Positions 2,238-57,100 of a stretch of DNA of 64,000 nt are shown here, piece by piece; positions within the stretch are counted from its first letter, which is position 1, and every line of letters begins with the position of its first letter. Origin of the DNA: Rebecca billardiae RCC1528 (lineage: Eukaryota > Protista > Haptophyta); contig OZ251250.1 in the NCBI GenBank assembly GCA_965240325.2, forward strand, positions 124,001-188,000, written 5' to 3'. Under the pieces are notes generated by a model. It searched no databases, had not been told where the DNA came from, and saw only the letters and a program-made list of their open reading frames with translations. The position numbers were made by a program, and so were the translations under genes.

Positions 2238-4356
2238 ATGGCGGCGGCCGCCGCGCGTGTGGCGCGCGACGTGCCGGCGGCGTGGTCGCGCTGGGTGCTG
2301 CCGTCGCCGTACGGCGCGGGCGGCCGCGTGGAGGGCTTCGTCGCGCCCGGCTGGGACCGCGTGCGCGCCGCGTTCGAGGCCAACTTCGCCGCCGGCCAGG
2401 AGCTCGGCGCGCAGCTGACGATCCGGCGGCGCGGCCGCGTCGTCGTCGACCTCTCAGGCGCCTCGGCCTCGGCGCGCGCGCCGGCGGGGTACGGCGCGTC
2501 GACGATGCAGTGCGTGTACTCGACGGGCAAGAACCTCGAGGCCGTCGCCGTCGCCATGCTCGTCGACCGCGGCCTCCTCGACTACGGCGAGAAGGTGGCG
2601 CGCTATTGGCCGGAGTTTGGCGCCGCGGGTAAATCCGGAGTAACGGTCGCCGACCTGATGCGGCACGAGGGCGGCGTGCCGATCCTCGCGCAGGCGGGGC
2701 ACGAGCACGACCGCGCGCGCGACCGCAAGCTCACGCCCGACGACGTGCGCGCCGTCGAGCCCATGGAGGCGATGATTGCGGCCGCCGCTCGGATGCCGCC
2801 GCCGCCGCCGCCGGCCGCGGGCGGCGCGGGCGCTGAGGGCGCGTACAACCCGCGGTGCTACCACATGCTCACGCGCGGCTTCGCCGTGAGCGCGCTGCTC
2901 CGCCGCGTCGACCCCGCCGGCCGCTCCCTCGGCCGCTTCGTCGCCGACGAGATTGCATCTCCCCTCGGCCGCGCGTGCGACGGCGGCTCCGAGGTGCGCG
3001 CGAGATTGCATCTCCCCTCGGGTAGGGTTGGGGTTAGGGTTGGCGCGGCGCGAGATTGCATCTCCCCTCGGCGCGGCGCGGCGCAGGGTGGCGCCGGCTG
3101 GCGGGCTCGCTCGCCTGCGCGCGCGCGGCGTGCGCGCCCGCCACACCTCGCGGCAGCGCTCGCTGCGCCGTTGGACGGATGGCCTGCCCTAACCCTAACC
3201 CTAACCCTAACCACCATTGGACTGGCCTGTACCGCACCGCACCGCACCGCACCGCACCGCACCCTGACTGATACGCACCCAGCCGCCTTGGCTCCCGGAC
3301 TCCTGGCCTCGCACCGCACCGCGCCGCTCCGGCTGCCGCTGCTGCCGCGCACGCCCCTGCCCGCGACCCTCACCCTCGCCCGAACATACGACACGCGACA
3401 CGCTACGCGCTACACCGCACCCCGCCCGACCACGCCACCGCGCGCCCGCGCGGTGCCGGCCGCACGGCACGCGCCGCGCGCGCGTTCCCTCGCCCGCGCC
3501 CGCCGCGGCGCACGCGCGCTGCCGCAGCTGCGCTGCCGCATGCAGCCTGATCCCGACCGCGCCGCGCGCCGCCCCTCCTCCCCCGCCGCCACCCCGCCTC
3601 CGCACAGCGCGCGCGCGTGCACAGCTGCGCTGCGGCATCCCAACCGCCGAGCAGCGAGATTGCAATCTCGCGCCGCTGCGGCAGCCGAGCCTTCTCTACG
3701 CCGGCGGTTGCATCCTGCTGCCCGCGCTCCTCGGCCTCGGGTGTCCGGTGCTCTCCGCCACCATCCGGACTTTCCGCAGCTCCACCTCCATCCTCACCTC
3801 CGTGCCGGTCACCTGGTTCGACCCCAAGCTGCCTCGGCCCTCGTTCAACAACACGCCGGAGGGGCGCGCGCTCGAGATCCCGAGCGCGGGCGTGTACGCG
3901 AGCGCGCGCGGCCTCGCGGCGCTGCACGCGACGATGGCGTCGGGCGGCCTCGTGCCCGACGACCGCGCCGACGACGCCGGGGGTGGCGGCGGCGGTGGCC
4001 GCGCGGCCGAGCCCCGCGCGCGGCTGCTCTCCGCCGAGGCGGTGGCGGAGGCGCTGGCCGAGCCGGTCGACCGGCCGGACACCGGACTCGAGGGCAACGC
4101 GTGGGCGATGACGCGCGGCGGCTTTGCGCGGCTCGACACCCTGCGCGGCCTCGCCTTCCACCCGGACGACCCGGGCGCCTACGCCGGACTGGTGGGCTGG
4201 GGCGGCTGGGGCGGCTCGATCGGCGCGTGGGACCCAGATCGCGATCTCGCGCTCGCGTACGTGCCGAGCGGGATGGGGCCGTACCTGATCGGCGGGCCGC
4301 GCTCGCGCGCCATCCTGCACGAGGTGCAGCGCGCGCTCGCGGAGACGGGCGGCTGA
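2238..4356 (+). CDS. Beta-lactamase-family (class C/PF00144-like) serine hydrolase; exons 2238-2993 and 3625-4356 (~495 aa)
   Basis: SxxK motif (YSTGK), LLDYGEKVARYWPEF, LMRHEGG, EIASPLG, GWGGWGGS..WDPDRDLALAY. A GT..AG intron at 2994-3624 joins the two ORFs in phase 0. Confidence 0.88.
3188..3211 (+). repeat. Interstitial telomere-like (CCCTAA)4 in an intron
   Basis: ccctaaccctaaccctaaccctaa. A G-strand version (ggtagggttggggttagggtt) lies at 3021-3041 in the same intron. Confidence 0.8.
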
Positions 4357-4701
4357 GCGGTTGACACCGTGCCGCCAGGCAGCACGGGCGGTGTGACGGC
4401 GCTGGGCGCGGCCGCTCATGAGTGAGCACTAGCGACGCTGCGCTTCGGCCGGCAGCATCGTCCGGTGACAGCGGCGGCGCACCTTATTATCACAGCAACG
4501 TGACTTCTTTTAGTTGAAGCGCGGCCGTTAGCGTAGTCTGCGTAGTAGTGTATCCAGCGGCCGAGATTATATATATATAATTTTATTATCGTCGAAATTT
4601 ACGTAGTACTATATATGCGCTGCGCGCGCGCCCCTAGGGGGCGGCGCGCGCGCGCGGCTGGTCCCCCCTGCATGCCCGCACCGTCAGCTGCCTGATTGCC
4701 G

Positions 4702-7100: not shown

Positions 7101-7191
7101 GGCGGCGTCCGCGGATTCCCAGACGACAACCTTATTAATACCTTATGCTGATAATATGCCATATACCCTCTCCAAGTTGGCGTATTATTGG

Positions 7192-7343
7192 TCAATCTCG
7201 CCTGCCTGAGCTGTGTGCGTCTCTTACTGTATTGACTGAACCTCATCCATGACTAACCCGTGTCCGGTCAATCCGGTGGTCATATACGCATTCGAGTATA
7301 ATTTAGCCGTCCTGCCATACCTGTGTCGTTAAAGTCATAGAAT
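7192..7343. repeat. Dispersed repeat fragment: core motif plus putative right TIR cctgtgtcgttaaagtcatagaat
   Basis: Core is shared with 2050/2097/47301. The terminal motif recurs at ~25891 (+) and inverted at 47191-47213. Confidence 0.75.
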
Positions 7344-7520
7344 GGGGTACGGCTCGTCCGATGAACCCTTGCTGGCACCAATCAGGCAGCCGTTGTCGTC
7401 ATCATAGTGATCAAGTTTCCTACGCGCCCGCGACCGGCGCAACCGCGGCACGCGGCGAGCCGCCGAGCCTTGAGCGAGCTGCTCCCCACGCGTCGTGATC
7501 AGACCTCGCTAGCCGCTCCG

Positions 7521-9849: not shown

Positions 9850-11858
9850 TCACGGCTCGGCGGTGTCGGGCAGCGCGACGACGCACATGCCGTCGCGGAG
9901 CTGGTGGATGGAGCACTCGGCCAGCAGACCGGCGCTGCCGCCGCCGCCCGCGCCGCCGCCGCCGCCGCCGCCGCCGCTGCCGCCGCCGCTGCCGGGGCCG
10001 CCGTCGGGTGCAGAAGGGCCTGGGGCGAGGCAGGTGGCGGCGGCGGCGGCGCTGCCTGCGGCGGCGGACGGCGCGGCGGGGCCGTGGGCGCCGCCGCCCG
10101 GACGCGCCTCCCCCGCGCGCGCCGCGGGCGGGACGAGGGCGTAGAACCGCAGGCCGCCGCAGCGGAGCGCGCCGCCGCCGCCGTCCGCGCCCGCGCCGCG
10201 CGCCGCCGCCGCGCCCTCCGCCCGCGCGAGGTGCGCTCGCACAGGCGCGCCGAAGCGCGCGGCGAAGGCCGCGCCGAGCTGCTCTGGGCGCGTGGGCCGC
10301 GGGCCGGCGTAGAGGACGTCGCGGGCGCCGAAGCGCAGGACGAGCGTCAGTCCGGGCGAGTCCGGGGGCGTGGGCGCCGTGGGCGGTGGCGGCGGCAAGC
10401 GCGCGAGCGGCGCGCCGGCTGGCGGCGCGCCGGCGCGCGGCGTGGGCGCATCCGCCGCGTCCACCGCGTCCGCCGCCACGTCCGCCTCCGCGTCCTGCGC
10501 GAGCCGGATGCAGTCCGCGAGCGCGCGCATCCACCGCCGCTTCCCCGCCAGGTCGGGCGCCGCGAGCTGGTGCAGCGTGCGCGCGCGGCCGGCGGCGGCG
10601 CGCGCGGGCGGCGCCGCGCCACCCGCGCGCGCGGCCGCGCCGCCGCCGCCCGCGCGCGCCGCCGCCGCGCCCGCGGCGGTGGCGGCGGCGGCGGCGGCAG
10701 CGGCGGCGGCGCCGCCCGCGGCGGGCGGCACGCTGATGGCGAAGAGGAACGAGCTCGGCCGCTCGTCCAGCAGCTGCGCACCCGCTGCGCAAACCGTCGG
10801 CGTCGGCGCGGCGCGCGGCGGTCGTCGTGTCAGGCGGTGCGCAGCATCGATTATAAAATGAGAATTCGACAGCGCGCAATAAAAAAAACCACCGTGGCGG
10901 GAAACAAAAGGGCGGGCACCCCAAATCGGAGCGTGAGTGGGCGGAGGTCACGGTGGCGATGCACGAGGACGGGGCGTGTCGCACGTGCCGGGCAGCGGGA
11001 TGAGAGCGGGCGCGGCGTGCGCATGCGTGCGCATGCGTGCGCGCGCACGCGCGCGGGGGCGGGCCGGCGGCTCAGAGGCTGAGTGAGAGGGGCGCTGGGC
11101 GGCGCCGAGATCGCAATCTCGCGCGGAGGTCGCACGCTCGCGCCGAGATCGCCATCTCGCGCCGCGCGCACCCGTGAGCAGCACAATCTCGGAGGGCGTC
11201 TCGGAGTGCTCGCCGCCGAAGATGTGCAGCTTGGCGGGCGGCGCCCAGCGCGCCCCCGGCGGCAGCGCCGGCGGGGGCGGCGCGCGCGCGGCCGGCGCCG
11301 CGGCGCCGCCGGCCGCGGCGCCGGCGGCGCGAGCGCTGCCGCTTCGCGCGCCGCCCCCGGCCGCGCTCGCGCCGGCTGCGCCGCCGCCGCCCGCCTCCGC
11401 CGCCGTCGCCGCGGCCGGCGCGCCCTGCCGCGCGCGCGCCCGCCGCCCCGCCGCCGAGCCGGGTAATGCGGGTAATACGGGTAGCGTGAGTACGAGCAGC
11501 CGGTCGTGCCATAGCAGCTCCGAGCCAATCAGCAGCCGGCCCTGCAGGACTCCCACCTCAGTCCGGTGAATCTCGGGCATGTGCGTGAGGCCGACGTAGC
11601 AGCGCTCGAGCGCGGACACGGCGTGCGCGCACACGCTCGCGTGCGCCGCGCGGAACAGCAGCAGCGGCGGGCGCGCGGCCGGCGGCGCCACCGCGGAGCG
11701 CGCGGCGGGCGCGGGCGGCGCGGCCGCCGCGCCGGCGCCGCCGCCCTTCGCTCCGCCGCCCGATGCGGCGGCGGCGGCCGCCACAGCTGCCGGCGGCGGC
11801 GGCGGCGAGCAGAGGATGATGGCAAAGTCGAGCAACGGCGGCGGCTGCGCGATCACCG

Positions 11859-11890
<32 letters not shown>

Positions 11891-12529
11891 GCCGCCGCCG
11901 CCGGGCGCGCGGCGGTGGCGGCGGCGCCGGCCGGGCCGGCGGGCCGGGCGCCGAGCGCCGCGCCTGCCACTTGCTTCTGGTGGCCCGAGGCGAAGCCTGG
12001 GAGCACGTCGTCGATCTCGTGCAGCGCGAGGGTCGTGTGCGCGCCGCGCCCCGGCTGCGCCACGCTCAGCTCCTGCGCCGCGCCGTCCAGCCTCAGCATG
12101 GCCGCCGGCATCGCGCCTGGCTCGGCCGCGGCCGCGGGCGCGCGCGCCGAGCGCGCGCCGAGCGCCTGCTGGTACACGGGGAAGAAGGACGGGCGGGAGG
12201 AGTCTGCGCGCGTGCGCGCGCGCGCGTGCGGCACGCACGCACGCCGGGGCGCCCTGTGATCAGCCGCTCGATCGCGCGCGCGGCCGCGCGGGGGGTCGGC
12301 GGCGGCGGCGGCGCAAGAACGCACCGACGTCAAAGCGCAGCCCGGCGCCGCAGTGGGCGCACGACATGGCGAAGGCGAGCGGGCAGGCCGGGCACTTGAC
12401 GAAGGAGGCGCACTGGGGGCAGCGCACCACGCGCGCCGTGCGGTTGCGCTCCATCGGGAACGTGAGCACGCGCGAGACGCACGGCAGCAGCTCGGCGTCA
12501 TGGCGCCCAGCCGCGGCGGCCGACGCCAT
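9850..12529 (-). CDS. Cys-rich Zn-ribbon plus tandem PH-like domain protein (3+ exons)
   Basis: Exon 1 (12529-12325) has CPQC..CPAC..CAHC. Exon 2 from 12203 has LALHEIDDV..LLLFRA..AVSALE and LQGRLL..LWHDRLLVL..LHIF. The last exon has LHQLAAPDLAGKRRWMRAL, typical of a PH C-terminal helix. Confidence 0.6.
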
Positions 12530-12773
12530 GGCCGATCGAGCGCGCCGACGCGCGACTTGCCGACTGCCGCACTGTTGTCTGTTTGTGCGCAAGCAAATTG
12601 TTTTTCGGCTGATGACGTTTTCGTCGCGCCTTTTTCTTTTCGCGGCGACGATGATTTTGAAAGGGGGGCGCGCCCCGACTCTGCTCTGCAGTGCAGCTGG
12701 CGGCCAGCGCGGGCGGCGGCGGCCATCAGTGCAGTGCAGGGCGCACGGGGGCTGGCCGCGGCGCACGGCGCGC
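12530..12773. promoter_or_regulatory. Short divergent (bidirectional) intergenic promoter region
   Basis: 244 bp, with T-rich tracts, between the inferred ATGs at 12529(-) and 12774(+). Confidence 0.5.
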
Positions 12774-15164
12774 ATGACGCCCGGCCCGGCGGAGTACGCC
12801 GGCCCGGCCGTCTTCGCCCTCGAGCTCGCGCTCTACGGCGCGCTCCTCGTCGTCTGCGTCGCGTCCGGCCGCCGTTTCCTGGAACCTTCCGCGCCGTGGG
12901 TGGAGCATGGCTGCCTCACGCGCAAGCTCTTCCACGTGCTGCTCGTGGCGTTCGCGGCGACGCGCGCGGGGTGGGCGCTGCTCGAGCTCGCGCTCACCGC
13001 CCTCCTCGGCGCCGACGCCTCGTGCGTCCGCCTCGCCAACCGCCGGCTCGCGCCGCGCCGACCCGCATGCATCGTCGTCGACTCGGTCGCCGTCTGTCTG
13101 TTCGACACGACGTTTTTGCTCGTGCGCGCCGCGCACCGCCGCGCACCGCCGCGCGTGCGTGCGTGCGTGCGTGCGGCCCCGTCCGCCCGTCTGCCCGCCC
13201 GTGCGTGCGCGCGGCGTGGGGTGCTACGCCGCGCACCGCCGCGCGCGTGCGCGTGCGTGCGCCTCTGTGCGTGCGTGCGTGCGTGCGTGCGGCGTGGGGT
13301 GCCGCGCCGCGCACCGCCGCCGCGCCGCCGCGCCGCGCTCGCCTGCCCTACCCTCACCCTCGCCCTACCCCCCACGCGCCCACGGCACCCGGCGCCCGCC
13401 CGCAGGTGAGCGCGCAGCTCGCGGACGTGCTCGCGCGAGGCTGGAAGTCCAGCCAGCGGCTTTGGTGCGCGCTGCGCGCCGCCGTCGGCGTGCTGTGGGT
13501 GTATTTGGCGTCGAGCGTGCTCGTGGCCGTGCTGGCGGAGCTCGGCGCGGCGGGCGCGGCGGCGCGCGGGTGCGGCGGCGGCGGCGCGCGCGCGGGGCAA
13601 GGGGGCGGCGCGGCGCGGCGCGCGGGTGCGGCGGCGGGCGCCGCGGGCGGCGGCGGGGGGCAGCAGCAGCAGCACGGCGGCGGCGGCGCACTCGGCGGCG
13701 GCGGCACGCCGGCCGCCGCGGCGGCGGCGGCGGCGGCGGGCGCGCACGGCGCCGCCGGCGCCGCCGCCAACGTGGCCGCCCTCGAGGCGGGCGCGCGCGC
13801 GGTCGCTGCCGACTATTACGCGGGCGGTTTCGTCGTACTTGGCGGCTACTCACTTTTACTCGCGCTGTGCGTTCTCTGGCTCGTGCTCGCGCTCTCGCTG
13901 CTGGGCGTGGGCGGGCTGCGCGCGCTGCGCCGCGGCGGCGGCGCCGTCGGCGGCGGCGGCGGCGGCGGCGGCGGCGCGCGCTGGGCGCGCGCGCAGCAGC
14001 AGCAGCAGCAGCTGCCCGCCGCGCGCGCGTCGGCGCTGCGCGTGCGCGCGCACGCGCTGCTGCTGAGCGCGCTCTGTGCCCTCGGCTTTGCGCTGCGCTT
14101 CGCGCTCTTCCTGCGCGCCTTTGAGCTCGCGCGCGCGCACGGCCGCGGCGGCGGCGGTGGCGGCGGCGGCGCGGCCGGGGTGTCGCCGGCGGCGGGCGCG
14201 GCGGGGTCGGACGCGCTCGCGCCGTCCGCGCTCGCGTGGCGGCTGTCCGCGTACTGGCTCCCCGAGCTGCTGCCGTGCGCGTGCCTGCTCACGGCGGAGC
14301 ACTTCCTGAACTCGCTCAAGATCGGCGTCTCGCGCCACCCGGACTTCTCGCTGGCGCCGGTCGCGCGCGTGCGCGCGCGCCGGCGCGCGGCGCGCGCAGG
14401 GCTCGAGCTGACGCGAGCGGCGGTGGGCGGCGGCGGCGCGTTCGGCGGCGGCGGCGCGGCGCCCGAGGGCGCAGGCGGAAGGCTGCCGGGTGGCGGCGCC
14501 GAGGGCGGCGGCGGCTCGGCCGGCCGCGAGCGCGCGCCGGCGCGCGCGGCCGGCGCGCGCGGCGCGGCCGCGGCGGCGGGCGCGAGATTGCAATCTCGCG
14601 CGGCGGCGGCGGGCGCGAGATTCCGCGAGATCGCGGCGGCGAGCGCGGCGCGCGCGGCGGTGGCGGTGGCGGGCGCGCTGGGCACGCCGCCGCCGCGCGC
14701 GCTGCTCCACGCGCACGCACGCCGCGCCGCGGCGGCCGCAGCCGCCGCGCCGACGCCCGCCGCCGCGGCGCGCGGCGGCGCGGACGGCGCGCGCGGACGC
14801 ACCGTCGCCGCGTGCGCGGCTTGCGCGCCGCCCGCGCTGCCCGCCGCCTCGCCCTCCGCCGCCGAGCTGATGGCGGCGGGCGCGGCGCGCGAGGCGCTAC
14901 GAGAGCCTCTGCTGCCGCCTGTCGGCATGGCTGCCGCCGGCGGTGGCGGTGGCGGTGGCGGGCGGCACTGCGGCGGCGGCGGCGAAGGCGGCGGCGGCGA
15001 TGGCGGCGGGCGCGGTGGCGATGGCGCGCCCCTTGCCGCCATGGGCCCAGCGGCAGACCTCGAGAGCGGCGGCTGGTGCGCCGGCAGCGGCCGCGCGGCC
15101 GAGGCACGCGCGCGCCATGCGCCACGCGCCGCCGCGCCGCCGCCGCGCGGCGCGTGGCTCGGCC

Positions 15165-15198
<34 letters not shown>

Positions 15199-15323
15199 GC
15201 GGCTGCTGTCGCTGTTCGCAACCGGCGCCGGCGCGGCGTGGGGCGCGGCGGCCGCGCTGGGCGCGGCGGCCGCGCACGCGGTGTGCTGTGCGCGCCGCCG
15301 CAGCCCACGCCACCTTCCGGTCC

Positions 15324-15354
<31 letters not shown>

Positions 15355-18300
15355 TCGCTCTGATGGAGCGCTGGCAGGGCCGCACCACGGCGGCGGCTCG
15401 GCGGCGCTTGGCGGGCGTGGCGGCTGCGGCTGCAGCGCGGCGCGCTCGGCGGACGCCCTCCTCGCGCCGGGCGCGCGCGCCGTGCCGCCCGCCGCGGACG
15501 ACGAGGACGCGGCCGCCGCCGCCGTCGGCCTGCCGAGCGGCGCGCTGCGCCGGCCGAACGCGCGCTTCGTCGCGAGCTATGTCGTGCGCGCGAGATTGCA
15601 ATCTCGGGGTGGCGCGGCCGCGGCGGCGCGGCGCGCGGCGGCGAGCGCGGCCGCGCTCGACGCGTACTACCCCGGATACTCCGGATACTCGGGATACTCC
15701 GGATCGCCGCCGCCCTCGGGCGGCGGCTCGCCGGTGCGCCGGCCGCGCACCCTGCCAACCACGCTGCCGGTCGTGGCCGGCCGAGATTGCAATCTCGCGG
15801 CCGCGGCCGCCGACGGCGGCAGCGGCGACGACTCGGCCGGCGGGGGCGGCAGCGCCGGCGGCGCTCGGCGGCGCAGCGGCAGCCCGGCCGCCGCGCCGGC
15901 CCCCACGCCCGGCACGCCCCACCCCACCCACGGCCCGCACAGTACCCACGGTACCCGCATGACCCACATTACCCGCACGCTGTATGTGCGCGAGCTCCTG
16001 CTCGAGGGCCCGCTCTCGTTCGCCGTGCCCGCGGGCTGGCTGCTCGCGATCGTCGGCGAGAGGCACCGGCCGGTGGCGGCGCTGGCGGCGTCGCTGGGCG
16101 CGGCCGAGGGCGGCGCGGGCGGCGGCGGGCAGCCGGGCGGGTCGCAGGCGCACGGTGGCGCGGCGCGCGGGGCGGCGGCGCTGGCAGCGGTTGGCGGCGG
16201 CGGCGGCGGCGGCGGCCCGCTGGCGCGGCTGCTCCGACGCTGGGCGCGGCGCGGCAGCGCCGTCGGCGGCGGCGCCGGCACCAACACGGCTGCCGCCGGC
16301 GGCGCCTCGCCCGGACCACCCACCCGGACCGCGCTAATGGCGGCACTCCTCGGCGCGCTCCAGGACGAGCGCCGCCGCACGGGCGCCGAGTGGACGCGCG
16401 CGCAGCTGCTCAAGCGCCACGACTATCTGACCGCGCTGGTGCGCCAGCTCGAGCTGCTGGACGGCTACTACTACCCCGGGTATTCGGGGTATTCGGGGTA
16501 TTCGGGGTATTCGGGGTACGCGGCCGGGCTGGGCGAGGGCAGGCTCTGGTTCAAGCCGTCGACGCGGCGGCGCGACGCGGCGCTGAGCTGCGTGCCGTGC
16601 AACTTGCACGTGCAGTACATGCAGGTCTGGGCCGGGCCGCCCGCCTCCGCCCCCGGCGGCGGCGACGGCGGCGGGTGCGCGGCGGCGCTCGGGCCCGCGC
16701 GGCCCGCGGCGCGCGGCGGCGGCACGCGCGGCGCGGTGCACGTTTGCGTGACGGTGGGCGCGCCGGCCGCGCACCCGCTCGGCTTTGCGCGCGGCGGCGT
16801 CGCGCACTTGGACGAGAGGATCGGCGCGACGGCGCGCGAGCTCGAGCGCTGCCGGCGCGAGCTGGCCGCGCACAGCGTGCACGCGCGCGCTGGCGGCGGC
16901 GGCGGCTCGGCCGAGCCGCCGCCGCCTCCGCACGTGAGCGACGACGCCGCGCACGCGGGAGTCCTCTACCCTAACCCTAGCCCTAACCCTAGCCCTAGCC
17001 CTAACCCTAGCCCTAACCTCTGGACGGGCGGCTCCGTGCTGCTGGATGGCTCCGGCTCGCCGTGGGGCGGCGGCGCGCCCGACCCGACCCTGGTCCTCCC
17101 CCTGCCACCGCTCTCTCCGCCGCGCGCCGGCGGCGGCGCGCACGCGCCCGTCCGAGATTGCAATCTCGACGGCGCGCCTCGGGGCGCCGGCGCCTGCCCG
17201 CACCCGCGCCCGGCACAGCCGCCGCCGCCGCTGTGGGGCGGTGCGGGCGGCGGCGGCACGCCGCCGCGGCCGCAGCCGAGCCCGCTGCGCGCCGCGGCGG
17301 AGCGCGCGCTGCCGCCGCGCTGGGTGGCGGCGCTGGGCGGCGGCGGCGGCGCGTCCGGCGCCCCGGGCGGCGCGGCCGGCGGCGGCGGCGCGGCCCTCGG
17401 CGATTCGTCACCCAGCATGGCCGCCCCGGACTCGGGCGGTTTCAGCATGGCCGCCGAGCACTGCGACTACCTCGCGAAGAAGCTGTGCGAGCTGCGCTTC
17501 GAGCGGATGCAGCGGCTGGACTGCTGCACGGCGCAGGCGCTCGCCATCGTCGGTACTGCGGTGGGCGCGCAACTCCTCGCGCTGCTGCACGATGGAGGCG
17601 GCTGCGCGGACGCGGACGCGGCGGAGGCGGAGGCGGCGGAGGCGGAGGCGGAGGCGGAGGCGGCGGAGGCGGAGGCGGCGGCGGCGGACGCGCGGAAGGG
17701 GGGCGGCGGCGCGGCGAAGGCGCCGCCGCCGGTGCCTCCGCCCGAGCCCGGCGGCGGCGGCGGCGCGGCGCGCGCCACGCCCGCGCCACCGCGCGGCTTG
17801 TGTGGCGGTGGCACCGGCGGCGGCGCCGCCGCCGCGCCGCCGCCACCGCCGCCCGCCGCCGCCGCCGAGCCCGTCTCGCCGCCCGCGCGCCTCTCCGCGC
17901 GCTCCGCCGCCATCCTGCGGCAGTGGTCCCGCCACGGCATCCTCCTCGGCTGGGAGTCGCTCCTCTCCGCCGCGGGGGACGAGGCGGGCATGCTCGCCGA
18001 TTTCGTTGGCACAGTCCGAGCCCTCCGGGCGCAGGGGCTGGCGGTGCGGCTGGCGCGCTCGCGCGCGGGGTGCGCGGCGGCGGGCGGCGGCGGGGAGGGC
18101 GACGGCGGGGGCGGCGGCGCGGAGGCGGGCGAGGTCGGGTCGGCGGGCCCGCCCGCGCCGCGCCCGCGGCCGCGCGCGCCACCAGCCCGCGGCAGCCCTG
18201 AGCAGCCGCCAGACACCGCCAGAGCTGCGAGATTGCAATCTCAGCCGCCAGACGCCGTCCGAGCTGCGAGATTGCAATCTCGCGGACGCGCCGCTGCCGC

Positions 18301-18864
18301 CCTCCCGCCGCTCGCGTGGGGTCGACGGTCGGAGGTGGGCGAGCGCGCGTGGCTGCTCGCGCGCGCCGGCGCGTGGGGGGACCCGCTCGCGTCCGTCCTC
18401 GCGCTGCCCGACGTCAGCGTGCACACGGAGTGCTGGGGCGGCGGGCGGCGCGGCGGCGCCGCGCCAACGGCGGCCGACGCGGACAATGTGCCCACCGCCG
18501 ACGACGACGGCGGCGGCGGCGGCAGCGGCGCGGCGCGGGTGCGGCGGCGCGGCGGCGGTGGCCCCGGCGGCCAGCGCACGGCTCGCTCGCCGGCCACGCC
18601 AGCCGCGTCGCCAGAGGCGGCAGATTCAGCAGCAGCGGCCGCCGCCGCAGCCGCCGCCCATCCCGCGGCGGCTGGCGCAGACGCGGGCGCGGCGGACGCG
18701 GCGGACGCGGCTGGCTTGGACGGCGGCAGCGGCGCGTCCGCGAGATTGCAATCTCGCAGCTCGGACGGCGGCGCCGAGTCCGACGCAGACGCCGCCGCGT
18801 GCGATGGCGAGCGCGGCGGCGACGGCGGCGACGGCGGCGTCGAAGGCAGCAGCGCCGAATCCAG

Positions 18865-18934
<70 letters not shown>

Positions 18935-20816
18935 TCGCGTCGGCTGGTGTTGACGCTGGAGCTTCCGCCGCCGCTGTGGCGGCTGCTGCCGCCCGAGCTG
19001 CGAGATTGCAATCTCGCGGACGCGCCGCTGCTGCCGTGTGTGCTCGCACTCTTCACGCAGGTGCGCGCGCGCCGCGCCGGCGGCAGTGCCGGAGGCCCGC
19101 GGCCGGCCCAGTGCGCCGCGGCGCGCGGCTCTTGCGCGCCCAAGCGCCGACGCGCGAGATTGCAATCTCGCGGCGGCGCCGGGCGCGGCGGTGCGCCCCC
19201 CGCTGCGCCGGCAGGCGCGCGCCCCACTCAAGCCTGACTGACTCGGCATGGCCGCCACTGCCCTGCCGCGCCGGCTCCGCTCGCCCTTTTCCCCTTTTCT
19301 TTTTTCCTGATTTCCTTTTCTCTTCTTTTCTGTGTTTCTCTTTCTTTTCCTTTTCTCTTCTTTTCTGTGTTTCTGTGTTTCTCTCTCTTGTGCCGGGGGC
19401 GCGCAGGGCATCAACCTCACGCAGCAGGTCGCGCAGGCCGTCGGCTCCGCGCAGGCGCGGCTGCAGGAGCGCACCAACGCCGACAGCTACTCACTTTTAC
19501 TCGCCTATGCGCACCGCGTCCTTGGCGCGGAGGCGGCGGCGGCGGGTGTGCCCCTGGCGCGCTCGCCGCACGCTCAGCCGCCGGGCGGTGGCGCGCACGC
19601 GGCGGCGGCGGCGGCGCAGCAGCACGGCGCAGCGCCCGGCACGCCGGGCGGTGGCGTGCCCGGCCTCGGCGGCGCCGGCGGCAGCCGCAGCAGCCTCGGC
19701 AGCGCGCCGCTGCCGCCGCAGCCGCAGCAGCAGCAGCCGCAGCAGGCGGCCGCGTCGCCGCGCGGCGGCGCGCGCTGCTCACCGCGCGGCGCGCCGAGCC
19801 CCGGACTGGCGCCCGGACCGTCACTCGGCTGGGGCGGCGCGGGCGCGCGCACGCCGGGCGGCACGGCTGGCGGTGCGGGCGCGCTGGGCACGCCCCTCGC
19901 CGCGCTCAGCCGCGCGGCCTCCTCCCTCTCCGACTATGGCGCCGGCGCCGGCCCGGCGCACGGCGGCGGGAGCGGCGGCGGCGGCGCGGCGGCGCCTGAC
20001 TCGACGGCCGCCGCCTCGGGCTCGCCCTCGCCCGCGGGGTCGATGACGGCGCCGGCGGCGCTGCTGAGCGTGGCGGCGGCGGCGGCGGCCGCGCACTACT
20101 CCCTCGCCGTCGTGCTGGACGACGGCCGCCACCACACGCTGAGCAAGCTGCAGCGGCTGCACCGTGCGCGCCCGCGCCGCCGCGCGCCCGCCGCCGCGCG
20201 CCCGCGCCGCGCGCCCGCGCCGCGCGCCGCGCCGCGCGCCGCGCCGCGGCTGACGCCAGCCCCCACACACCCCCCGTGCCCCCGCGCCCGCGCCGACGTG
20301 CGCGCAACTCTTCGCGCTGCCCTGCTTCCCGGGCCTCCTTCGTCTTCTGTGCTCATCTCCCTCGGCCGCAAATTCGGCATCGTCAATTGCGTCTCATATT
20401 TCGTTATTATTTATTATTCCCTTTTCTTCTTTTCTTTTCTTTCGTCCCCTCGCGGCGCCGGCTGCGCAGACCTGGTGCACTGCGCGCGCGGCGAGCCGTC
20501 CGTCGACCTGCTGCAGCTGGCGGAGGACGTGGTGCGCCGGCTGCACGGCGTGCGCGTGACGTCGTGCAAGTCGGGCAAGGACCGCACCGCCATGTCCGTC
20601 ACCGCCGAGCAGGCCCACCTCCTTGCCCACGAGCACGGCGTCAGCGCCGCAGACGCAGAGGCGCTCGCCGGCCGCATGCGCCGCGAGGGCGTGCGGCTCG
20701 AGAACGCCAAAAAGAACACGGGGCGCTCGCTGTACGCGTTCTCGCGGCTGCAGCGGCGCTGGCTGCCGCAGCAGTACGCGCCGCCCGAGGGCACGTACGC
20801 GCGCGGCCGCACGTAG
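12774..20816 (+). CDS. 7TM (TOM1/GPR137-like) domain fused to inositol polyphosphate 4-phosphatase (INPP4-type); exons 12774-13121, 13406-19060, 19407-20163, 20470-20816 (~2,368 aa)
   Basis: N-terminal hydrophobic helices with TRKLFHVLL..TRAGW and YWLPELLP. INPP4 blocks FKPS..VPCNLHVQ, VTVGAPAAH.LGF..GG, ILRQW..GILLGWESLLS..GDEAGML, LFTQ|GIN and catalytic CKSGKDRTAMSVT (20565-). All three inferred introns are GT..AG and keep the frame. Confidence 0.85.
16969..17018 (+). repeat. Telomere-like CCCTAA/CCCTAG array, in frame in the large exon (PNPSPNPSPSPNPSPN)
   Basis: Seen directly in the sequence. Confidence 0.75.
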
Positions 20817-21172
20817 GCGGGCGCGGCCTGCGACGGCACCTGTTATATTGATGACCTCACGGCGCAGATCGATTTATTCTCAGATCGAATATATAATATA
20901 ATCGGCGCTTTATTGATGTCGTGTGTCTCAGTCTGAGTGTGCTGATATGATGCTGCTGACGACACTTTGACCACGAGCAGCGAGCGTGCTGCGCACTGCC
21001 TGCGATCGTCCGGACGACAGATGATGGAACTTCGTTGCGAGCAGCAGCGGATCGTCCGCGCCGCCTACTGTCCCGCCCGGATCGAGGCCGCCGCCGATTA
21101 ACGGCGCGCGGCGCGCCCGCGATCATCAGCCAGCCGGTCCGCGGTCGTAGATGAGTCGTCAGCGCCGCTCAC

Positions 21173-36444: not shown

Positions 36445-38285
36445 ATGCAGGGGCCACGATGGCGGCGCGGCGCGCTCTCAGGGATCGTAGCGTGCGCCGC
36501 GCTGGCGTGCCGCGCGGCGGACGACGGCGTGGGCAGCGCGGCGTACCCGCGCGGCGTCGACACCGCCTCCCCGCCGCGCCCACGCCTCGGCGCGCACGCC
36601 GCCGCGCCGCTCAGCGACCCGGAGACGAGCCTGCAGCTTCCGGCCGAGCGCGCGCTGCGGCCGTGCTCGCTCGACGCGGACGCGCTCGCGCTGCAGCGCC
36701 AGCTCGCGGCGCTCTCGGCGTGCGCGTGCGGCGGGCACGCCGCGCCCACCAGCCACGCGCCGTCCTCCGCCGCCGCCACCCGTCCGCCCGCTGTCCCGCC
36801 GAGCGCATGCGACCCGGCCGCGCGGCCGATTGACGCGCGCATGCGCGCGCACTGGGGGCTCGGCGCGGAGCTGAGCACGCTACTCAAGCCGCTCGCGCGC
36901 GCAGTGGAGCGGCGCGCGCCGCTGCTCGACCCGGTCTTCCCGCGCGCGGGCTGCGAGCCGACGGCGGCCGAGTCGCACCCGCCGCCCGGCGGCAGGGCTC
37001 CGCCTCTGCTCAGCAGCTGCCTCGGGCTGCGGCCCTCCGCCCAGCGTTCGTGCGCGGCCGTGCGCGCGGGTGCGAGCACGCGCGCGCCGCGCCGCGCCGC
37101 GCTCGTCCACGCCCCCTCGCGCTCGGGCCAGCATCTGACCAGCGCGCGCGGCGCGGCGCGCACGCCCGCGGCCGCCCCCCGCTCTGCGCGGCGGCAGCTG
37201 ACGGCTCGCCGGCCGACAACGGGAGCGCGGCGGCGGCGGCGGCGGCGGCGCGGCCCGCGGCGGCGGCGGAGCTGGTGCGCGCGGACGTCTTCTCGCGCAC
37301 CACCGACGCGCGCGTGCCCGCGCCGTACGCGCACGCCAAGAGCCTGTTCTGGTGGACGGGCCAGGCGCTCGCATTCCTCCTCCGGCCCGCGCCGCCGCTG
37401 CTGCGCGACGCGCGCGCGCAGCAGGCGCGCTGGGGGTGGGGCGCGCGCGCGGGCGAGCGCGTGCTGGGCCTGCACGTGCGCCGCGGGGACACGTGCCTGC
37501 GCGACTGGCTCACGCGCGACGCGGCGGCGGGGTACCGCGACGGCGTGATCGAGCGGCGGCACGCGCGCCGCTGCGACCCGCTCAGTGCGTACGCGCCCGC
37601 GGCGCGCGCGCTCGCGCGCGCGCACAACCTGAGCGCCGTGTTCATTGCGACGGACGACGAGGCGGTGGTGGCGGCGGCGCGCGCGGCGCCGGCGGCGCTG
37701 CTCGGCGTGCGCCGCGTGTACGCGCTCGGGCGCGACGTGCTCAACCGCTCGATGTACTGGCGCGGGTACATGGACGACGTGCTGCGCGGCGCCGAGATCG
37801 CCATCTCGGATGGGGGGGGCGCCGAGATCGCAATCTCGGACGAGGGGGCGGCGCCGGGCGCGGGCGCGGCGGGGCCGGGCGGCGCGCCGCCTGGCGCCGC
37901 CCCCACCCGCCGCGGCTTCGACGCGCGCGCGGACGCGAGGGCGACCATGCTGGACCTGCTGCTGCTCGCGGACTGCGACGCGCACGTGGGCAAGGCCACT
38001 TCCAACCTCTTCCGGCACGCGCTTGCGCTCTCCAACGCGTTCAAGGGCGGCGACTGCGTCGTCCCGTACGCCTCCCTCGACGCGCTCTGGTGCGCAAGCC
38101 ACGGGAAGCGCGTCGGCGTCTCGTTCGTCGACTTCCGCGCCGACCCGCGCCCGGGGCGCAGAGGCGCCGGCGGCGGAGCCGGTGGCGGCGCGACGCAGCA
38201 CGCAGCAGACGCAGAGCGGCCCGGCGCGAGCGGCGCCCGCCGCCGCCGCCGGCTGCGCACGAAGGGGCACCGGTTCTACTGCTGA
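36445..38285 (+). CDS. GT23/FUT8-like (O-FucT fold) fucosyltransferase; exons 36445-37069 and 37198-38285
   Basis: N-terminal anchor; GLGAEL, VLGLHVRRGD, VFIATDD, DLLLLADCDAHVGKATSN. The inferred intron is in phase. Confidence 0.8.
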
Positions 38286-45597: not shown

Positions 45598-45617
45598 GTG
45601 GAGGGGTTAACCTGCTA

Positions 45618-49937: not shown

Positions 49938-51937
<2,000 letters not shown>

Positions 51938-52140
51938 ACCCGGCCTGGTCGGAACGGTCGCAAGGCGCGGACTCACTGCGCATTCAGTATCCGTATGCCC
52001 GGTATGGCGTATGCTGCATGCATGTCTGCTCGGCCACCGTCTGAGCCTCACGCTTCGGCCCAGCCCATTGTGACATACCACGTCGTTAACGTACTGATCG
52101 GCCACTCACGGGCGCGGCCCAGGGCGCCAGCAGCTCTCGG

Positions 52141-52618
52141 TCAGTCGGCCGCGGCGCGCGGCGGCGGCAGGGCCAGCCGCGGCCGCTGCGGCCGGTCAGC
52201 AGGCGCGGCGGACGGTCCGGGGGCTGCTGCCACGCCGGGCGCGCACGGCGGCGGCGGCGGCGGTGGGCAGCCTGCGTAGTCGAGCGGGCGCGCCGCGCCA
52301 CGCGCGCTCGCGAGCGCCGCGCCACCTGCCGACGCCGCCTGCGACGCGGCCAGCAGCTGCTCCACCCGCATGCGCGCCTGTTGCGTGCGTGTCACGCGCG
52401 CGCGCGCGGGTACGGTTAGAGGGACGACAGGGTGAGCGTGGGCGCGCGGGGTACGGGCAGGGGGATCGGGTGAGGGTGGGCGCGCGGGTACGGTTAGAGG
52501 GACGACAGGGTGAGGGTGGGTGGGCGCGCGGCGTGCGTTAGGCACGCTGCCACGCGCGAGGAGCGGGCGCGTGCATGCGCCTCGAGCGGGTGCCGTACAC
52601 CGCACACGCTCGGGCCAT

Positions 52619-52651
<33 letters not shown>

Positions 52652-53246
52652 CGCGCGCGCACACACACACACGCACGCACGCACACGCACACACACTCGC
52701 GCACACGCACGCACACAGGGCGGCGGTGGGCGGCGATTTTCGCTGTGGCGCCGCAGGCCGGCGCGGGGCGCGGCGCACCGTGCGCAGCACATCGCACACG
52801 GCGCGCTCGGTCTCGGCGCCATGCACGTCCACGAGCAGCGCGGCGAGCTGCTCGAGCGCCGCGCCCACCGCGCCGTCCGCTGCGAGCGCCGCGCGCCGCC
52901 CCTCAGCCGCGGCGCCGCCCTCGACGCCGCCGCGGGCGTCGGGCTCGTCGTCCTCGGAGGTTTCGTCGGCGTCCATCGCGCTGGGACCCACGCGCTCGGC
53001 CGAGATGTTCCCCCCCGGCGCAGCCTGCCCACCGCCGCCGAAGCCGCCGCCGCGCGCGCCCGTCAGTGTAAGCGGCCGCAGCGCGCGCTCCCCCGGCCGG
53101 AGCAATGGCCGCCACGGGTCCTCGAAGAAGGTGGGCTTGACGAAACTGCGGGCGTCGGCGGGCGGCGCGCCGCCGCGCGCGTGCGGCATGCCGCCGCGGG
53201 CACGCCCGCCGCGCGCCCGCCCGCCGCCCGACCGGCGGTCGCGCAT
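52141..53246 (-). CDS. Small two-exon hypothetical protein with an MPLKIP/TTDN1-like motif
   Basis: RGG-rich N-terminus, [14 protein letters not shown] (cf. KPSxxEDPW), helical [20 protein letters not shown], then an intron containing (CA)n, then ARMRVEQLL. Confidence 0.5.
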
Positions 53247-53995
53247 GGCGGCGAAGGCCGACGACCGCGCCGGCGCCCGTCGACCGACGGCGCGCGATTC
53301 TTGCTTGTTGTTTGCCGCCACCGCCAGGCCAGCCCGTTTCCGCAAGCGACGGAGCAATCGTACTGTCGTCAACCAGTCGTAGTCATTTGCTGGTACATCA
53401 ATCGCATTTAATCTAGATCCACGTAGTATACGACTCTGAAGAGTAAGGTAGCTGGAGTAGTCTCAAGCGCCGCGGCGATAATTCAGCGCACAGCACACTC
53501 ACAGCGCCGGAGCGCCTGTGCCGGGCCGCGGCAATCGGCATCCGGGCGTCGCCGGCATCCGCGGCGCGGCGGCGGGCGGCCCTGGGTGCTGCGCGTGCGT
53601 ACGCGCCGGTCCCGGGGCCATCCGGAGGGCGGCCGACCCGGCCACACGGGAGAGGCGCGCGCGGCGGTCCGCGAGCGGTCCGCGCCGCCAGCCGCCAGCC
53701 AGCCAGGGCGGCCGGCCCATCGGCCTGAGGCTGATTCGTCCTGAATGATGATCCGGACAGTGTCCGGACACGACCCAGCGGGCTCCGGCCGTCCCAGCCG
53801 CCAGGAGCAGCAGCGCGCCGCGCGCGCCCGGCCACGCGCCACGCCCGCCCGGCTGCCCGCGCCCGCCGGCGCGGCGGTGAGGAGGCGGGGGCGCCGCGGG
53901 TGAGCAGCCGAGATTGCAATCTCCGGCCGTGCCGCCCTCCGGCCCGGCTCCCGCTCGCTGGCCGCTGCGCATCCGCCCGGCACGCGGGCCGCCCC

Positions 53996-54192
53996 CCCGC
54001 CCTACTTCTTGCCACTGCCGCTCTGCGCCTCCGCCCCGCCCACGCCCGCCGCCATCTCCGGGTGCGAATCCATGAAGGACTTGAGCAGCGCGGCCCGCCC
54101 TACTTCTTGCCACTGCCGCTCTGCGCCTCCGCCCCGCCCACGCCCGCCGCCATCTCCGGGTGCGAATCCATGAAGGACTTGAGCAGCGCGGC
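53996..54192. repeat. 98-bp tandem duplication of the last codons and stop of the ankyrin gene
   Basis: ctacttcttgccactgccg...gagcagcgcggc starts at both 54002 and 54100. Confidence 0.92.
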
Positions 54193-57100
54193 GGTGTCGC
54201 GCTTGCCCGTGCGCTCGGCGAGCTGGAGCGGCGTGATTTTATTGTCGTCGGCGAGAAACGGGTTTGCGCCGCGGTCGAGGAGGAGCTGCACGACCTCCGG
54301 CTCTGCGCGGGCGGGGCGAGGGGGAAATAATAATAATCATAAGGGGGAAATCATAAGCGCACAAGCAGGCGCGCGCGGCTCGGCCGGACGCCGCAGGCGC
54401 ACCCCGGGCCCGCACCCCCCCCCCCCCCCCCCGTGCGCGCGCGGCGCACTCCGCTGCGCGCAGCCGCGAGCCGCCCCCGCGGCCGTGCTAGCCCGGCCGC
54501 CGCCGACAGCGCGCGTGCGCGCGCGCGCGCGCGCGCGGAGAGAGTGCGCCCTCGGCGCGGAGATTGCAATCTCGGCGAGCGGGCGCGCACCGGCCTTGAA
54601 GGCGGCGATATGCAGCGGCGTGCGCCCCTGCGAGTCGAGCGCGTCGATGTCGTCGAGCTTGTGCGCGTGCTGCTCCGACAGGTACAGCCTGTGCGCGCGA
54701 AGATGAATTGTGGAATTGTTTTTTGGGGGGCGGAGTTGTTTATTGGGAGTTTTTTTTGTTTTGGGGGATCGAGGGTTAATGTCGTGGGCGGGGAACGCGC
54801 CGGGCCGAGCCGAGAGCGCGGGGCGCGGGGAGGCGCGGGTCACGGTGAGTCCTGGCTGGCGGCGGCGACCTCGCCGTCCCGCACGCGGGACGGCGAGGCC
54901 ATCCAGCGCGCGGCCATGCGGACTCGGGTCGCAGCGCGCGCGCGCACTGGCCTGGCCGGCGCGCGCGCGCGCGAGAGAGAGAGAGCACGCGAACCCGCTG
55001 GAGCGCAGGGGCCAGGGCGGGGCGCACTAGCGCGCGCGCGCGCACCGCACGACGTCGGGCTTGTTGGACGTGAGCGCCTGGTGCAGCACCGTCTGCCACT
55101 CGTTGGACAGCCAGTTGATGTCCGCGCCGTTCGCCATCAGCCTGGTGCCAGGCAGCACGCGGCAGTCCGGACAGTCCGGTGTGGGCGCGCGGCGGGTGTC
55201 GGGGCGCGGAGGGTGTCGGGTGCCTCAGAGGTGGGGAGGGCGCGCGAGTCCGGATGGTCCGGGGGTCCGGGCGGTCCGGGAGGCGTGCGCGCGCGCGCGC
55301 GGGCGGGGAGGGAGCCGCGCCGACCCTACTACCCCCAAACCCTCACCCCCCCAACCCGAACCGCCCTCCCAGCCCGCGCGCAAGCTTGCAATCTCGGCGC
55401 GCGCGAGATTGCAATCTCGACACGGGCGCGCGAGATTGGTATCTCGGCGCGCACCAGTTGCAGATCTCGGGCCGGCCGTATTCGGACGCGGTGAAGAGCG
55501 CCGTCTTGCCGCGCTTGTCCATGTAGTCCACGTCGATGCCCGCGGCGACGAGCGCGGCGAGCAGCTCGCGCCAGCGGGACGGCTCGACCGGCGGAATCCG
55601 ACAGACTGCGCGGCGCGCGGGCGCGCGGGCGCGCGGGCGCGCGGGCGCGCGGCGCGCGGGCGCGCGGGCGCGCGGCGCGCGGGTGTGTGCGGGTCAGCCG
55701 GAGCACATGCGCCACGGCGCGAGCAGCCAACGCCACGGCGCCGCAGCCCGCGCCTCCGCGCGCCCCGCCCGCGCGTGCAATCTCGGCGCGATCTCGCACC
55801 TTTGTGCAGCACAGTCTCCTGCCTGTCGTCACATACGTTCACATTGTGCCCTGCACCCACGTAAGTAAAGAGGGTATCGTGCTCGCCCACGTCCGCCGCC
55901 TGCAGGAAGTTGACCTCGATCGACTCCTCCGACTGGAGCACGTTGGAGCGCTGCCGGATCTGGACCACCTGCATCGCGCAGCAGACAAACGACGAGCCGG
56001 AATTCACGAGCAGGAATTTCAAGGAAAAGAAAGTAGAAGAAATCCGCGTAAAAAGGAATAATAGCGCAAAAGCACAGGAGAGGATGGTCGCAGTCGCGAG
56101 GGGGCGTGCGCCCGGCAGGGGTGCGCCGGGGTGGGGGCGGTCACGCGTGCGCGGCGCGGACGGGAGCGCGCGCCGAGGCGCGCCACCCAACCCCTCAGCA
56201 AGCCCTCAGGCCACACGCACCGCCCCAGCACCGGACGCGCCGCGCCCCGCGCGCCGCCGCCGGCGCCGCGCGGCGGCGAGAAAAAGGACAGCCCGCCAAA
56301 TAAACAATTGGAAAAAAAAGCTCTCCCTCGCGGGCGCGCGCACCTTGGAGTCACGGCGCGACGCCTCGCGCGCTTTGATGCCGCCGCCCGGCACGAGCTC
56401 GCGCGAGCCGCGCCGCGAGCTGCGGCCGCCGCCCGCGCCGCCGCCCAGCTGTCCGCTAGAGCTGCGCCTCCCGCCACCGCCGCCGCCACCGCCGCCCAGC
56501 GAAGCCTGCGCGCGCGGACGGGGGCGGCGCGCGCGCGGCGCGGGGTGCGCGAGGCCGCGGGCGTGAGCGCCGCGTGCGCGGGCCGCGCGTGCCGCGCGCA
56601 GCCACCAGCCCCGGGGGCGGGCTCGCACGGCCGACCGGCCCCAGCGCCGCGCCGATCGGCGGCATCGGGCTCCCTTCCCCCGGACTTGCCCCGGACTCCC
56701 CCGGACTCGCAGGCGGCGCCGCCTAGGCCAGCAGTGGCGCCCGCCAGAGCTGGCGCCCCGTAGCCGTGCGCCGTGTCGGGCGGCCGACGGGCCACAGGCA
56801 GACGGCGTGCGTGCACGCTGGCGCCGCGCAGCGCAGCACAGCAGCTCGCGGCGCCAAAGAAATAAAAAAACTTGCTTTATTTCCTTGGCGGCGCGGCGCG
56901 ACCCCCCCGCCAGCCGGCCACGCACGCGCGGCCGCTCGCCGCAGCCACCGCGCGGCGGAGCCGGCGCCACCCGCAGCGCACAGCCGGCGGCGGGGCAGCG
57001 GGGGCCGGCGGGCAAACCGCACCCGATGACAGCCGTCGGCGCTAACCCAAAACCCTCACCCTCACCCTAACCCTACGCAGGCGCACCTTCGCGAGGAGCG

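Follow-up and report, generated by a model that had tools for sequence, protein, structure and literature searches.

The 64-kb stretch of the Rebecca billardiae RCC1528 genome examined here (contig OZ251250.1, positions 124,001 to 188,000; hereafter the window) contains many copies of the 16-nt word CGAGATTGCAATCTCG, which is its own reverse complement and holds a stop codon in none of the three frames. The analysis revealed that this palindrome is the most frequent form in a family of short inverted repeats that is specific to this genome and able to fold into hairpins. Many of the copies appear to be exonic, according to the indirect evidence that codon periodicity continues through them and that domain alignments span them. 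Because target-site duplications are lacking, the flanks are unique and no residues are added to the host proteins where this could be tested, we conclude that the word is created or maintained at its site within coding DNA. An ordinary transposon is ruled out by the data, which also argue against an evenly spread word of the type of HIP1, known from cyanobacteria, made by point mutation. We tentatively favour templated copying of short patches kept in frame, followed by erosion and local duplication, although we give this reading somewhat less than an even chance.

Abundance of the word and its hairpin family

Ten perfect copies of the 16-mer were found in the window (at 3655, 14583, 15591, 15782, 17153, 18267, 18741, 19001, 19155 and 55404), together with six one-mismatch copies (11106, 18228, 34035, 37823, 53909 and 54559) and four two-mismatch copies. 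The perfect copies agree in number and place, and the one-mismatch copies in number, with an initial annotation of this DNA, and not one match was obtained in 100 dinucleotide shuffles of the window. Variants of the form GAGAT-N3/4-ATCTC are present at 1429, 1450, 2949, 3002, 3052, 11145, 34555, 37794, 55432, 61107 and 61140; the sites had been listed before, but 61107 had been given as 61087 and some others were off by 1. When all forms were taken together, the window contains 27. Among stems of 5 nt in the window GAGAT alone is enriched (27, the next best being 3), and a general excess of short inverted repeats was rejected for this reason. The window is about 73% GC on average, with 4-kb stretches ranging from 54% to 81%, and the copies are found in GC-rich gene-body-like DNA, while the AT-richer intergenic stretches hold none.

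When we searched the 72-Mb assembly (41 contigs) with the reversed pattern as a control, 170 perfect 16-mers were found versus 0 in the control. The 14-mer core was present at 262 sites (control 0), corresponding to about one per 275 kb, and sites within one mismatch of the core numbered 433 (control 2). The search with GAGAT-N4-ATCTC gave 716 sites (control 10) and that with GAGAT-N3-ATCTC gave 340 (control 7). The wider family thus comprises about 1,050 sites with the stem GAGAT/ATCTC, usually CGAGAT/ATCTCG, and a loop of 3-4 nt. The 4-nt loops are most often TGCA (262), followed by CGCG (about 82), CGCA/TGCG (79) and CGCC/GGCG (about 29), and the loops TGC/GCA and TGA/TCA were seen 15 and 6 times, respectively, in a sample of 50 sites with a 3-nt loop. 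The predicted fold of the 18-mer has a 7-bp stem and a 4-nt loop, with energies of -5.8 kcal/mol as DNA and -8.4 kcal/mol as RNA and stability z-scores of about -3.7 and -4.2, respectively.

The variants of the core are unevenly distributed. Among 171 one-off variants, 85 are changed at positions 6 or 9, which are the loop ends and also third codon positions, and 79 of these 85 changes are T-to-C or A-to-G. None of the 171 is changed at positions 3 or 12, and the remaining 86 are divided among 30 possible types. Such a distribution is compatible with GC-biased synonymous erosion under protein constraint, and it fits conservation of the stem equally well.

We considered that the word might be a sequencing or assembly artefact, such as a systematic miscall of methylated TCGCGA as TTGCAA, since TTGCAA differs from this GC-rich palindrome by exactly the two changes expected of miscalled 5-methylcytosine. 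An independent assembly of run ERR14847148 by Logan includes a contig with the same TTGCAA word at the single locus that was examined (1 mismatch over 2,014 nt), although this run may be the source of the genome assembly itself. An artefact would also leave the excess of the encoded peptide and that of the hairpin stem unexplained. The word is therefore probably true DNA, and we regard an artefact as extremely improbable. CpG deamination of GAGATCGCGATCTC as the origin of TTGCAA was judged less likely as well, because the CpG at position -1 is never T (63 sites) and G+C at third codon positions (GC3) is about 95%. One further sequencing run (X1), in which 6% of the sampled words were present, gave nothing but short low-complexity matches when aligned to 17030-22990 and does not contain this organism.

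Reading frame and host genes

The flanks were compared for 63 copies, which came from 40 loci on contigs 1-20 and from the window; many of the 40 loci are paralogous receptor genes, and independent origins are fewer than copies. The G+C content of these flanks is three-periodic, with positions -1, -4, -7, -10, +14, +17, +20 and +23 being 89-100% G+C, indicating that the core is read in the phase GAG ATT GCA ATC TCG and encodes Glu-Ile-Ala-Ile-Ser (EIAIS). Since the word is palindromic, this phase and its peptide are identical on either strand. The GC-phase call assigned 47 of the 63 sites, and 25 of the 28 with a confident call, to the EIAIS phase. It had been proposed that the word is read in all three frames. 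This holds for the window, where the other two frames dominate, but outside it the EIAIS phase alone accounts for 42 of 49 sampled sites (about 86%). Most EIAIS-phase sites lie in frames that stay open across the entire 2-kb locus with GC3 of at least 0.9, and GC3 of the sampled genes is about 90-99%.

The host genes are unrelated to each other. They encode Lon protease, a P5C-reductase-like enzyme, CLASP, DENN, RCC1, F-box LRR, pseudouridine synthase, VPS13 and glycosyltransferase proteins, and many more are giant receptor-like genes with REJ, GPS and TIG domains. Specific preferred-codon 14-mers that encode E-V-A-V-S or a similar peptide were each found no more than a few times in the genome, though Val is expected to be commoner than Ile. 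Since natural E[IV]A[IV]S words are this rare, the GC-rich spellings of EIAIS (about 82 GCG and about 29 GCC sites) are likewise in excess, most plausibly because they are word copies that have eroded. The word itself thus stands far above a codon-aware background, with reversed controls of 0. Elsewhere, many 13-nt forms lie within unshifted reading frames, in several phases and both orientations, and such continuous frames cannot be explained by insertion of 13, 14 or 16 nt.

Comparison with homologous proteins

The word-bearing segments were aligned with homologues. In Lon, GLGPAEIAISDELL aligned without a gap to GLKKSNLQLRDQAI of 3m6a and AIKKGELTIDDSAI of 6v11. The segment PSEIAISTRT of the P5C-reductase-like protein is gapless against solved reductases and also against an environmental relative of 50% identity, which has GDVVIS, spelled GAC GTG GTG ATA TCG, at this place. 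In CLASP, ELLAEIAISADE was paired with EFLDLLLQEWQT, again without a gap, and in the pseudouridine synthase the word sits at the V-R-V-S strand of the family with a 2-residue gap on the host side and no insertion. In the esterase gene of the window, the 13-nt form GAG ATT GCA TCT C spells the conserved E-[IV]-A-S-P-[LI]-G gaplessly, with three AT-ending codons in a row; the coincidence of this near-match with family-typical residues (EIASPLG) had been pointed out earlier, and it does align to the motif of solved carboxylesterases. Added residues of the kind that Rickettsia palindromic elements bring were found in none of these five conserved proteins, nor in one large paralogue family, the TIG family described below. 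In the P5C reductase and TIG comparisons, the relatives have other letters than the word at about 6 of 14-15 positions. When a copy in a RIC1-like gene was aligned to solved structures, glycine-linker matches only were obtained.

Tests for a transposed or inserted element

The flanks of the 63 copies are unrelated except that the core is preceded by C in 57 of them and followed by G in 52. Target-site duplications were sought at 70 sites, and none was detected for any of the element boundaries tried, the 1-4 nt flank matches being equal to the shuffled expectation. A conserved element longer than the core was not found either; a few pairs of copies share longer patches, but the patch differs from pair to pair. 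None of the 70 sites lacks both C at -1 and G at +14, a pattern that suits a 15-nt in-frame unit or a 16-mer with independent erosion. With unique flanks and no target-site duplications, the word is not the core of a longer miniature inverted-repeat transposable element (MITE), and a MITE or miniature DNA transposon was rejected on both counts. The initial annotation, which had argued against transposition and had seen no target-site duplications, is upheld on both points.

A miniature mobile element might still have been inserted ready-made, as a Rickettsia-type palindromic element, a tiny MITE or an excision footprint, with selection keeping the in-frame survivors. The copies are perfect and young-looking within unrelated flanks, poly-Ala runs become seamless once 15 nt are removed, and copies adjoin possible splice sites at 2995 and 3655. 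Telomere-like repeats in frame, in the same open reading frame as several copies, also suggest that the genome tolerates short insertions in genes. A unit of 16 or 14 nt, however, cannot insert in frame, and neither target-site duplications nor conserved flanks mark the sites. Because the five conserved proteins and the TIG family have no added residues and the 13-nt forms lie in continuous reading frames, we consider this explanation quite improbable.

Hot-spot genes and shared patches

The copies are strongly clumped. An open reading frame of 2,294 codons on the forward strand (12353-19237), in which G+C peaks at the third codon position across most of 13400-19050, holds nine copies within an Ala/Gly/Arg-rich low-complexity protein without a Pfam match. 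Six copies are read ARLQSR (14583, 15591, 18228, 18267, 18741 and 19155) and three RDCNL (15782, 17153 and 19001), confirming the RLQSR and RDCNL readings assigned earlier at 14583, 15591 and 18741 and at 15782, 17153 and 19001, respectively. The perfect copy at 14583-14598 is followed by a degenerate partial copy at about 14616-14640, further perfect copies occupy 15591-15606 and 17153-17168, and that at 19155-19170 is near the end of the frame. At 18222-18301, the one-mismatch copy at 18228 and the perfect copy at 18267 are spaced by 39 nt. An inverted 49-nt copy of the patch 18253-18301 lies at 18722-18770 and holds the perfect 16-mer 18741-18756, while a direct 39-nt copy of the patch 18259-18297 lies at 18993-19031, holds the perfect 16-mer 19001-19016 and is read ELRDCNLADAPLL.

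This reading frame gathers several relatively AT-rich short repeats besides the hairpin word. A telomere-like CCCTAA/CCCTAG (TTAGGG-type) tract at 16965-17012 is in frame and reads PNPSPNPS..., and 9-nt microsatellites at 15670-15705 and 16470-16515 (GGATACTCC-like and GGGGTATTC-like) are also in frame, encoding YSG repeats.

A second hot spot lies 19 kb past the window, in an open reading frame of 2,658 codons with a match to the RIC1 beta-propeller. It carries eight perfect copies, three read EIAIS and five RDCNL (or GDCNL), and five of the eight are within 510 nt. Hairpins of any form are absent from about 20 kb before the window and from about 19 kb between the window and this gene, and the whole of contig 1 (5.1 Mb) has three perfect 14-mers.

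Exact patches around some copies are shared between sites. Two copies 104 nt apart in the RIC1-like gene share an exact 40-nt patch in inverted orientation, and the copy at 15782-15797 has about 37 nt, including low-complexity flanks, in common with a copy in the same RIC1-like gene 55 kb away (L211:3749). Exact 26-nt patches are common to a HEAT-repeat gene and CLASP, where the patch reads EIAISADE, and to the pseudouridine synthase and a TIG gene. These patches, 19-49 nt long and direct or inverted, are sharp-edged, and at independent loci the word is repeatedly found within tandem duplications of 24-39 nt. Judged from these sequence matches, the shared patches are suggestive of copying but not conclusive. 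The word also sits within bigger local palindromes, as at one locus on contig 13 (L020, G000:C13:2612677-2614927), where a larger inverted repeat at about 1001-1251 has two word copies 39 nt apart in each arm.

The patches bear directly on how the word arises. Identical patches of 19-49 nt, direct or inverted, are not a product of point mutation bias, which argues against the origin by mutation bias suggested in the initial annotation. A related explanation is molecular drive of the kind assumed for HIP1 and the DNA uptake sequences, in which near-matching coding DNA would be converted stepwise and without a donor by sequence-specific repair or methylation-dependent mismatch correction. Such drive would agree with the tested sites in Lon, the P5C reductase, the pseudouridine synthase, CLASP and the esterase, which have no added residues, with the conserved EIAS motif of the esterase, where three rare AT-ending codons mimic the word, and with the 13-nt forms that are in frame in several phases. 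Perfect sites (262) also exceed all non-loop one-off variants (86, of 30 types), and a repair drive of this sort is proposed in Elhai's model of HIP1 (PMC4390886). The density, however, is about 300-fold below that of HIP1 and the copies are clumped by gene, point changes do not make the identical 26-49 nt patches around some copies, relatives are about 6 of 14-15 positions away from the word, far beyond the reach of a one-mismatch repair drive, and the favoured letters oppose the strong GC3 bias of the genome. We therefore regard molecular drive as unlikely.

The TIG paralogue family

The TIG-domain family has 78 matches in the genome, and the longest open frame among them counts 21,132 codons. 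At the five homologous codons, GAG ATC/GTC xxx xTC xxG is found in most members, encoding peptides such as EIGFE, EITFE, EVSIR and EISVR, while the word is present in three lineages. It is perfect in L159 and L162, and likewise in L030, a distant member of about 41% protein identity. L159 and L162 are saturated at four-fold sites (identity 0.65, the same as in the most distant pairs). L161, in contrast, is a 97%-identical duplicate of L162 with a four-fold identity of 0.95, and it already differs by one A-to-G loop change, GCG replacing GCA. Because the saturated paralogues are both perfect while the young duplicate has changed, the comparison indicates that the word at this site is re-created or actively kept rather than being a passively inherited relic. 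Short gene conversion between paralogues could account for the TIG family, but not for the unrelated single-copy genes. The genes of TIG/REJ/GPS type (78 places, e.g. L159-L188) have uninterrupted frames of 2,000 to 21,132 codons, which indicates that giant genes are frequent here and contain few introns or none.

The retention of perfect copies in saturated paralogues would also be expected of a functional hairpin under selection, serving as a DNA site for a hairpin- or dimer-binding protein or as an mRNA structure, gained convergently and with its clusters being homotypic. The conserved stem with a loop that varies in sequence and length, the stable predicted fold (-5.8 and -8.4 kcal/mol as DNA and RNA), the position of the window copies in gene-body-like DNA rather than in the AT-richer intergenic stretches, and the clusters within single genes are all in line with this. 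On the contrary, the hosts have no common function, ranging from Lon, P5C reductase and CLASP to DENN, RCC1, F-box LRR and the REJ/GPS/TIG receptors, and in the young duplicate one letter of the loop has already been replaced. In a small sample, asymmetric variants had no preferred orientation with respect to the coding strand, which speaks against a role as RNA, and selection on the hairpin leaves the shared flanking patches unexplained. A functional hairpin thus seems improbable to us.

Proposed mechanism of spread

In the favoured reading, templated short-patch copying, a new copy would arise when a patch of 16 to about 50 nt is templated from an existing copy into GC-rich coding DNA during break repair or template switching in replication. 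What the data show are the enrichment, the hairpin family, the lack of added residues, the bias in frame, the spectrum of variants, the shared patches and the clustering, whereas the act of copying, its direction and its enzyme are inferred. Being self-complementary, the word could pair with any other copy in either orientation and prime on either strand, which would explain the inverted patches. Copies surviving in coding DNA would be those that keep the frame and encode a tolerable peptide. In structured domains these would lie where the old residues were already similar (x-I/V-x-I/V-x), and disordered Ala/Gly/Arg-rich segments would tolerate any frame. Afterwards the copies would be eroded by GC-biased synonymous change at the two outer loop positions, from TGCA to CGCA to CGCG, and local tandem and inverted duplication would multiply them, giving rise to hot spots at the level of the gene.

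A stronger form of this reading takes the 16-bp hairpin palindrome as a self-propagating word that overwrites coding DNA length-neutrally through hairpin-nucleated templated patch copying, which we see as a doubtful possibility. It would be a selfish or drive-like element dwelling in exons, replacing five codons per event (EIAIS, RDCNL or RLQSR) and seeding direct and inverted duplications.

Several observations weigh against copying. First, no known repair pathway is established that overwrites 16 nt at unlinked sites with so little flanking homology, and most copies share nothing outside the 16-mer. Second, several of the longer shared patches are low-complexity GC-rich DNA, in which chance matches are likelier, and the control comparison gave a modest excess only. 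Third, the 13-nt forms in several phases and both orientations need many donors or an origin in place. Fourth, the direction from TGCA to CGCG rests on the GC3 bias of about 95%, with no outgroup polarisation. Finally, random breaks predict many non-coding copies, yet the AT-richer intergenic stretches of the window hold none, so that copying would have to spare such DNA.

If templated patch copying is true, such length-neutral replacement would allow repeated DNA to settle in exons and leave them intact. The same five residues would be exchanged again and again in proteins that are not related, and the word would seed duplications within genes, both inverted and tandem. The debate on drive or function for HIP1, uptake sequences and similar words would then include a eukaryote whose genes are large and have few introns. 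In practice, the word will turn up inside real exons during gene prediction and repeat masking, where it should not be classed as a transposon.

Comparison with known systems

HIP1 of cyanobacteria, GCGATCGC, is a GC-rich word of 8 nt with about one copy per 1000 nt and a link to GATC/CGATCG methyltransferases (Elhai 2015, PMC4390886). HIP1 and the present word are both short palindromes far above expectation that lie within coding sequence without indels and are spelled through codon choice, with position-biased deviations. Unlike HIP1, the present word is eukaryotic, 14-16 nt long and AT-rich in sampled stretches of about 73% GC; it is clumped by gene, has one dominant frame and shows longer identical patches around some copies. 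The initial description as a HIP1-like, highly iterated word is thus right in that the word is over-represented and arises in genes without insertion, but not with respect to its density (about 1/275 kb vs about 1/kb) and its clumping.

In Pasteurellaceae and Neisseriaceae, the DNA uptake sequences (USS/DUS) have risen in place to more copies than expected, driven via natural transformation. They have preferences for reading frames and protein regions, and they are explained by molecular drive rather than by a benefit to each gene. Over-representation in place is common to USS/DUS and the present word, whereas USS/DUS are hundreds of times denser and are not hairpins alone. Rickettsia palindromic elements are insertions of 100-150 bp that add tens of residues relative to orthologues. 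Like the present word, they are palindromic repeats inside genes that are read through and tolerated by the protein, but our word is 16 nt long and, in the proteins that could be compared, brings no additional residues.

Coding palindromes in the mitochondria of Nematomorpha are perfect inverted repeats of up to 284 bp with a locus-specific sequence (PMC6649704). They are similar to the present word in being embedded in functional coding sequence with both protein and hairpin preserved, but here one short word recurs at hundreds of nuclear sites. Template switching at quasi-palindromes and the templated insertions of polymerase-theta end joining produce short patches from nearby sequence, direct or inverted (snap-back), often with loss of resident bases. 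Such events copy whatever is near and, unlike what is seen here, are not known to propagate a fixed word genome-wide. PARCEL repeats (PMC2996958), a 25-residue tandem domain, are unrelated to the word. In the literature searched, neither the 14-mer nor the 16-mer was found, and work on HIP1 in eukaryotes and on in-frame palindromes in algae gave analogues only. It seems that length-neutral patch spread of a word inside genes has not been described for a nuclear genome. Over-represented palindromic words inside genes are already known, and there is a real chance that the manner of spread is new.

Occurrence in environmental sequences

A metagenome scan gave 108 stretches, which we estimate to be of the order expected by chance, and viral contigs gave seven single matches to the word. 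Environmental metagenome contigs of 57-72% GC (L121, L104, L083, L138, L140 and L146, with triple arrays, and L097, L071 and L125) contain arrays of two to four hairpins with the GAGAT/ATCTC stem, varied loops and GC separators, beside a conserved box of about 28 nt. This box is absent from the present genome. No Rfam covariance model matches these arrays, the scan having covered the environmental arrays and not the window copies, and no transposase was seen among the neighbouring open reading frames in the two contigs checked. Six other metagenome contigs of 62-68% GC (L117, L129, L065, L132, L098, L044) have the perfect 14-mer beside a 13-nt variant or in 16-nt tandem repeats, and in L117 a hairpin pair is flanked by a 20-nt direct repeat. 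From these sequence matches, other organisms may carry the same word.

Further copies in the window

The remaining copies were located as follows. In the esterase/beta-lactamase gene, the perfect 16-mer at 3655-3670 immediately follows a possible ...CAG acceptor where a coding-like block starts. Upstream of it, three copies of the 20-nt unit GAGATTGCATCTCCCCTCGG begin at 2949, 3002 and 3052 (2949-3071, forward strand). The first encodes the esterase motif EIASPLG, and the other two are within a stretch with telomere-like repeats. The tracts there, at 3022-3043 and 3188-3213, lie in a probable intron after the EIASPLG exon, beside hairpin word copies, and are of the same telomere-like type as the one at 16965-17012, all three being inside gene bodies.

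Two eroded copies with loops CGCA and CGCC are spaced by 38 nt at 11106-11159. A 30-nt tandem duplication on the forward strand (37793-37838) also contains two eroded copies, with loops CGCC and CGCA; both are read EIAIS in the open reading frame 37050-38285, as previously proposed for 37794 and 37823. The mismatch search located single one-mismatch copies at 34035-34050 (GGAGAT...), 53909-53924 and 54559-54574, and three adjoining copies occupy 55381-55446, where the perfect copy at 55404 is flanked by two-mismatch copies at 55381 and 55431. Forms with a 3-nt loop are found in a 33-nt minisatellite at 34166-34378, whose six units each have AGATTGCATCTC, with an additional, diverged copy at 34366, and in two copies of GAGATTGAATCTC spaced by 33 nt at 61107-61152, which the hairpin variant search detected. 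Finally, two adjoining hairpins at 1421-1470 have a 9-bp stem, AAGGGAGAT / ATCTCCCTT, with ACG in one loop and AGT in the other. The DNA there is not coding-like, and this pair is a longer-stem relative of the word outside a gene.

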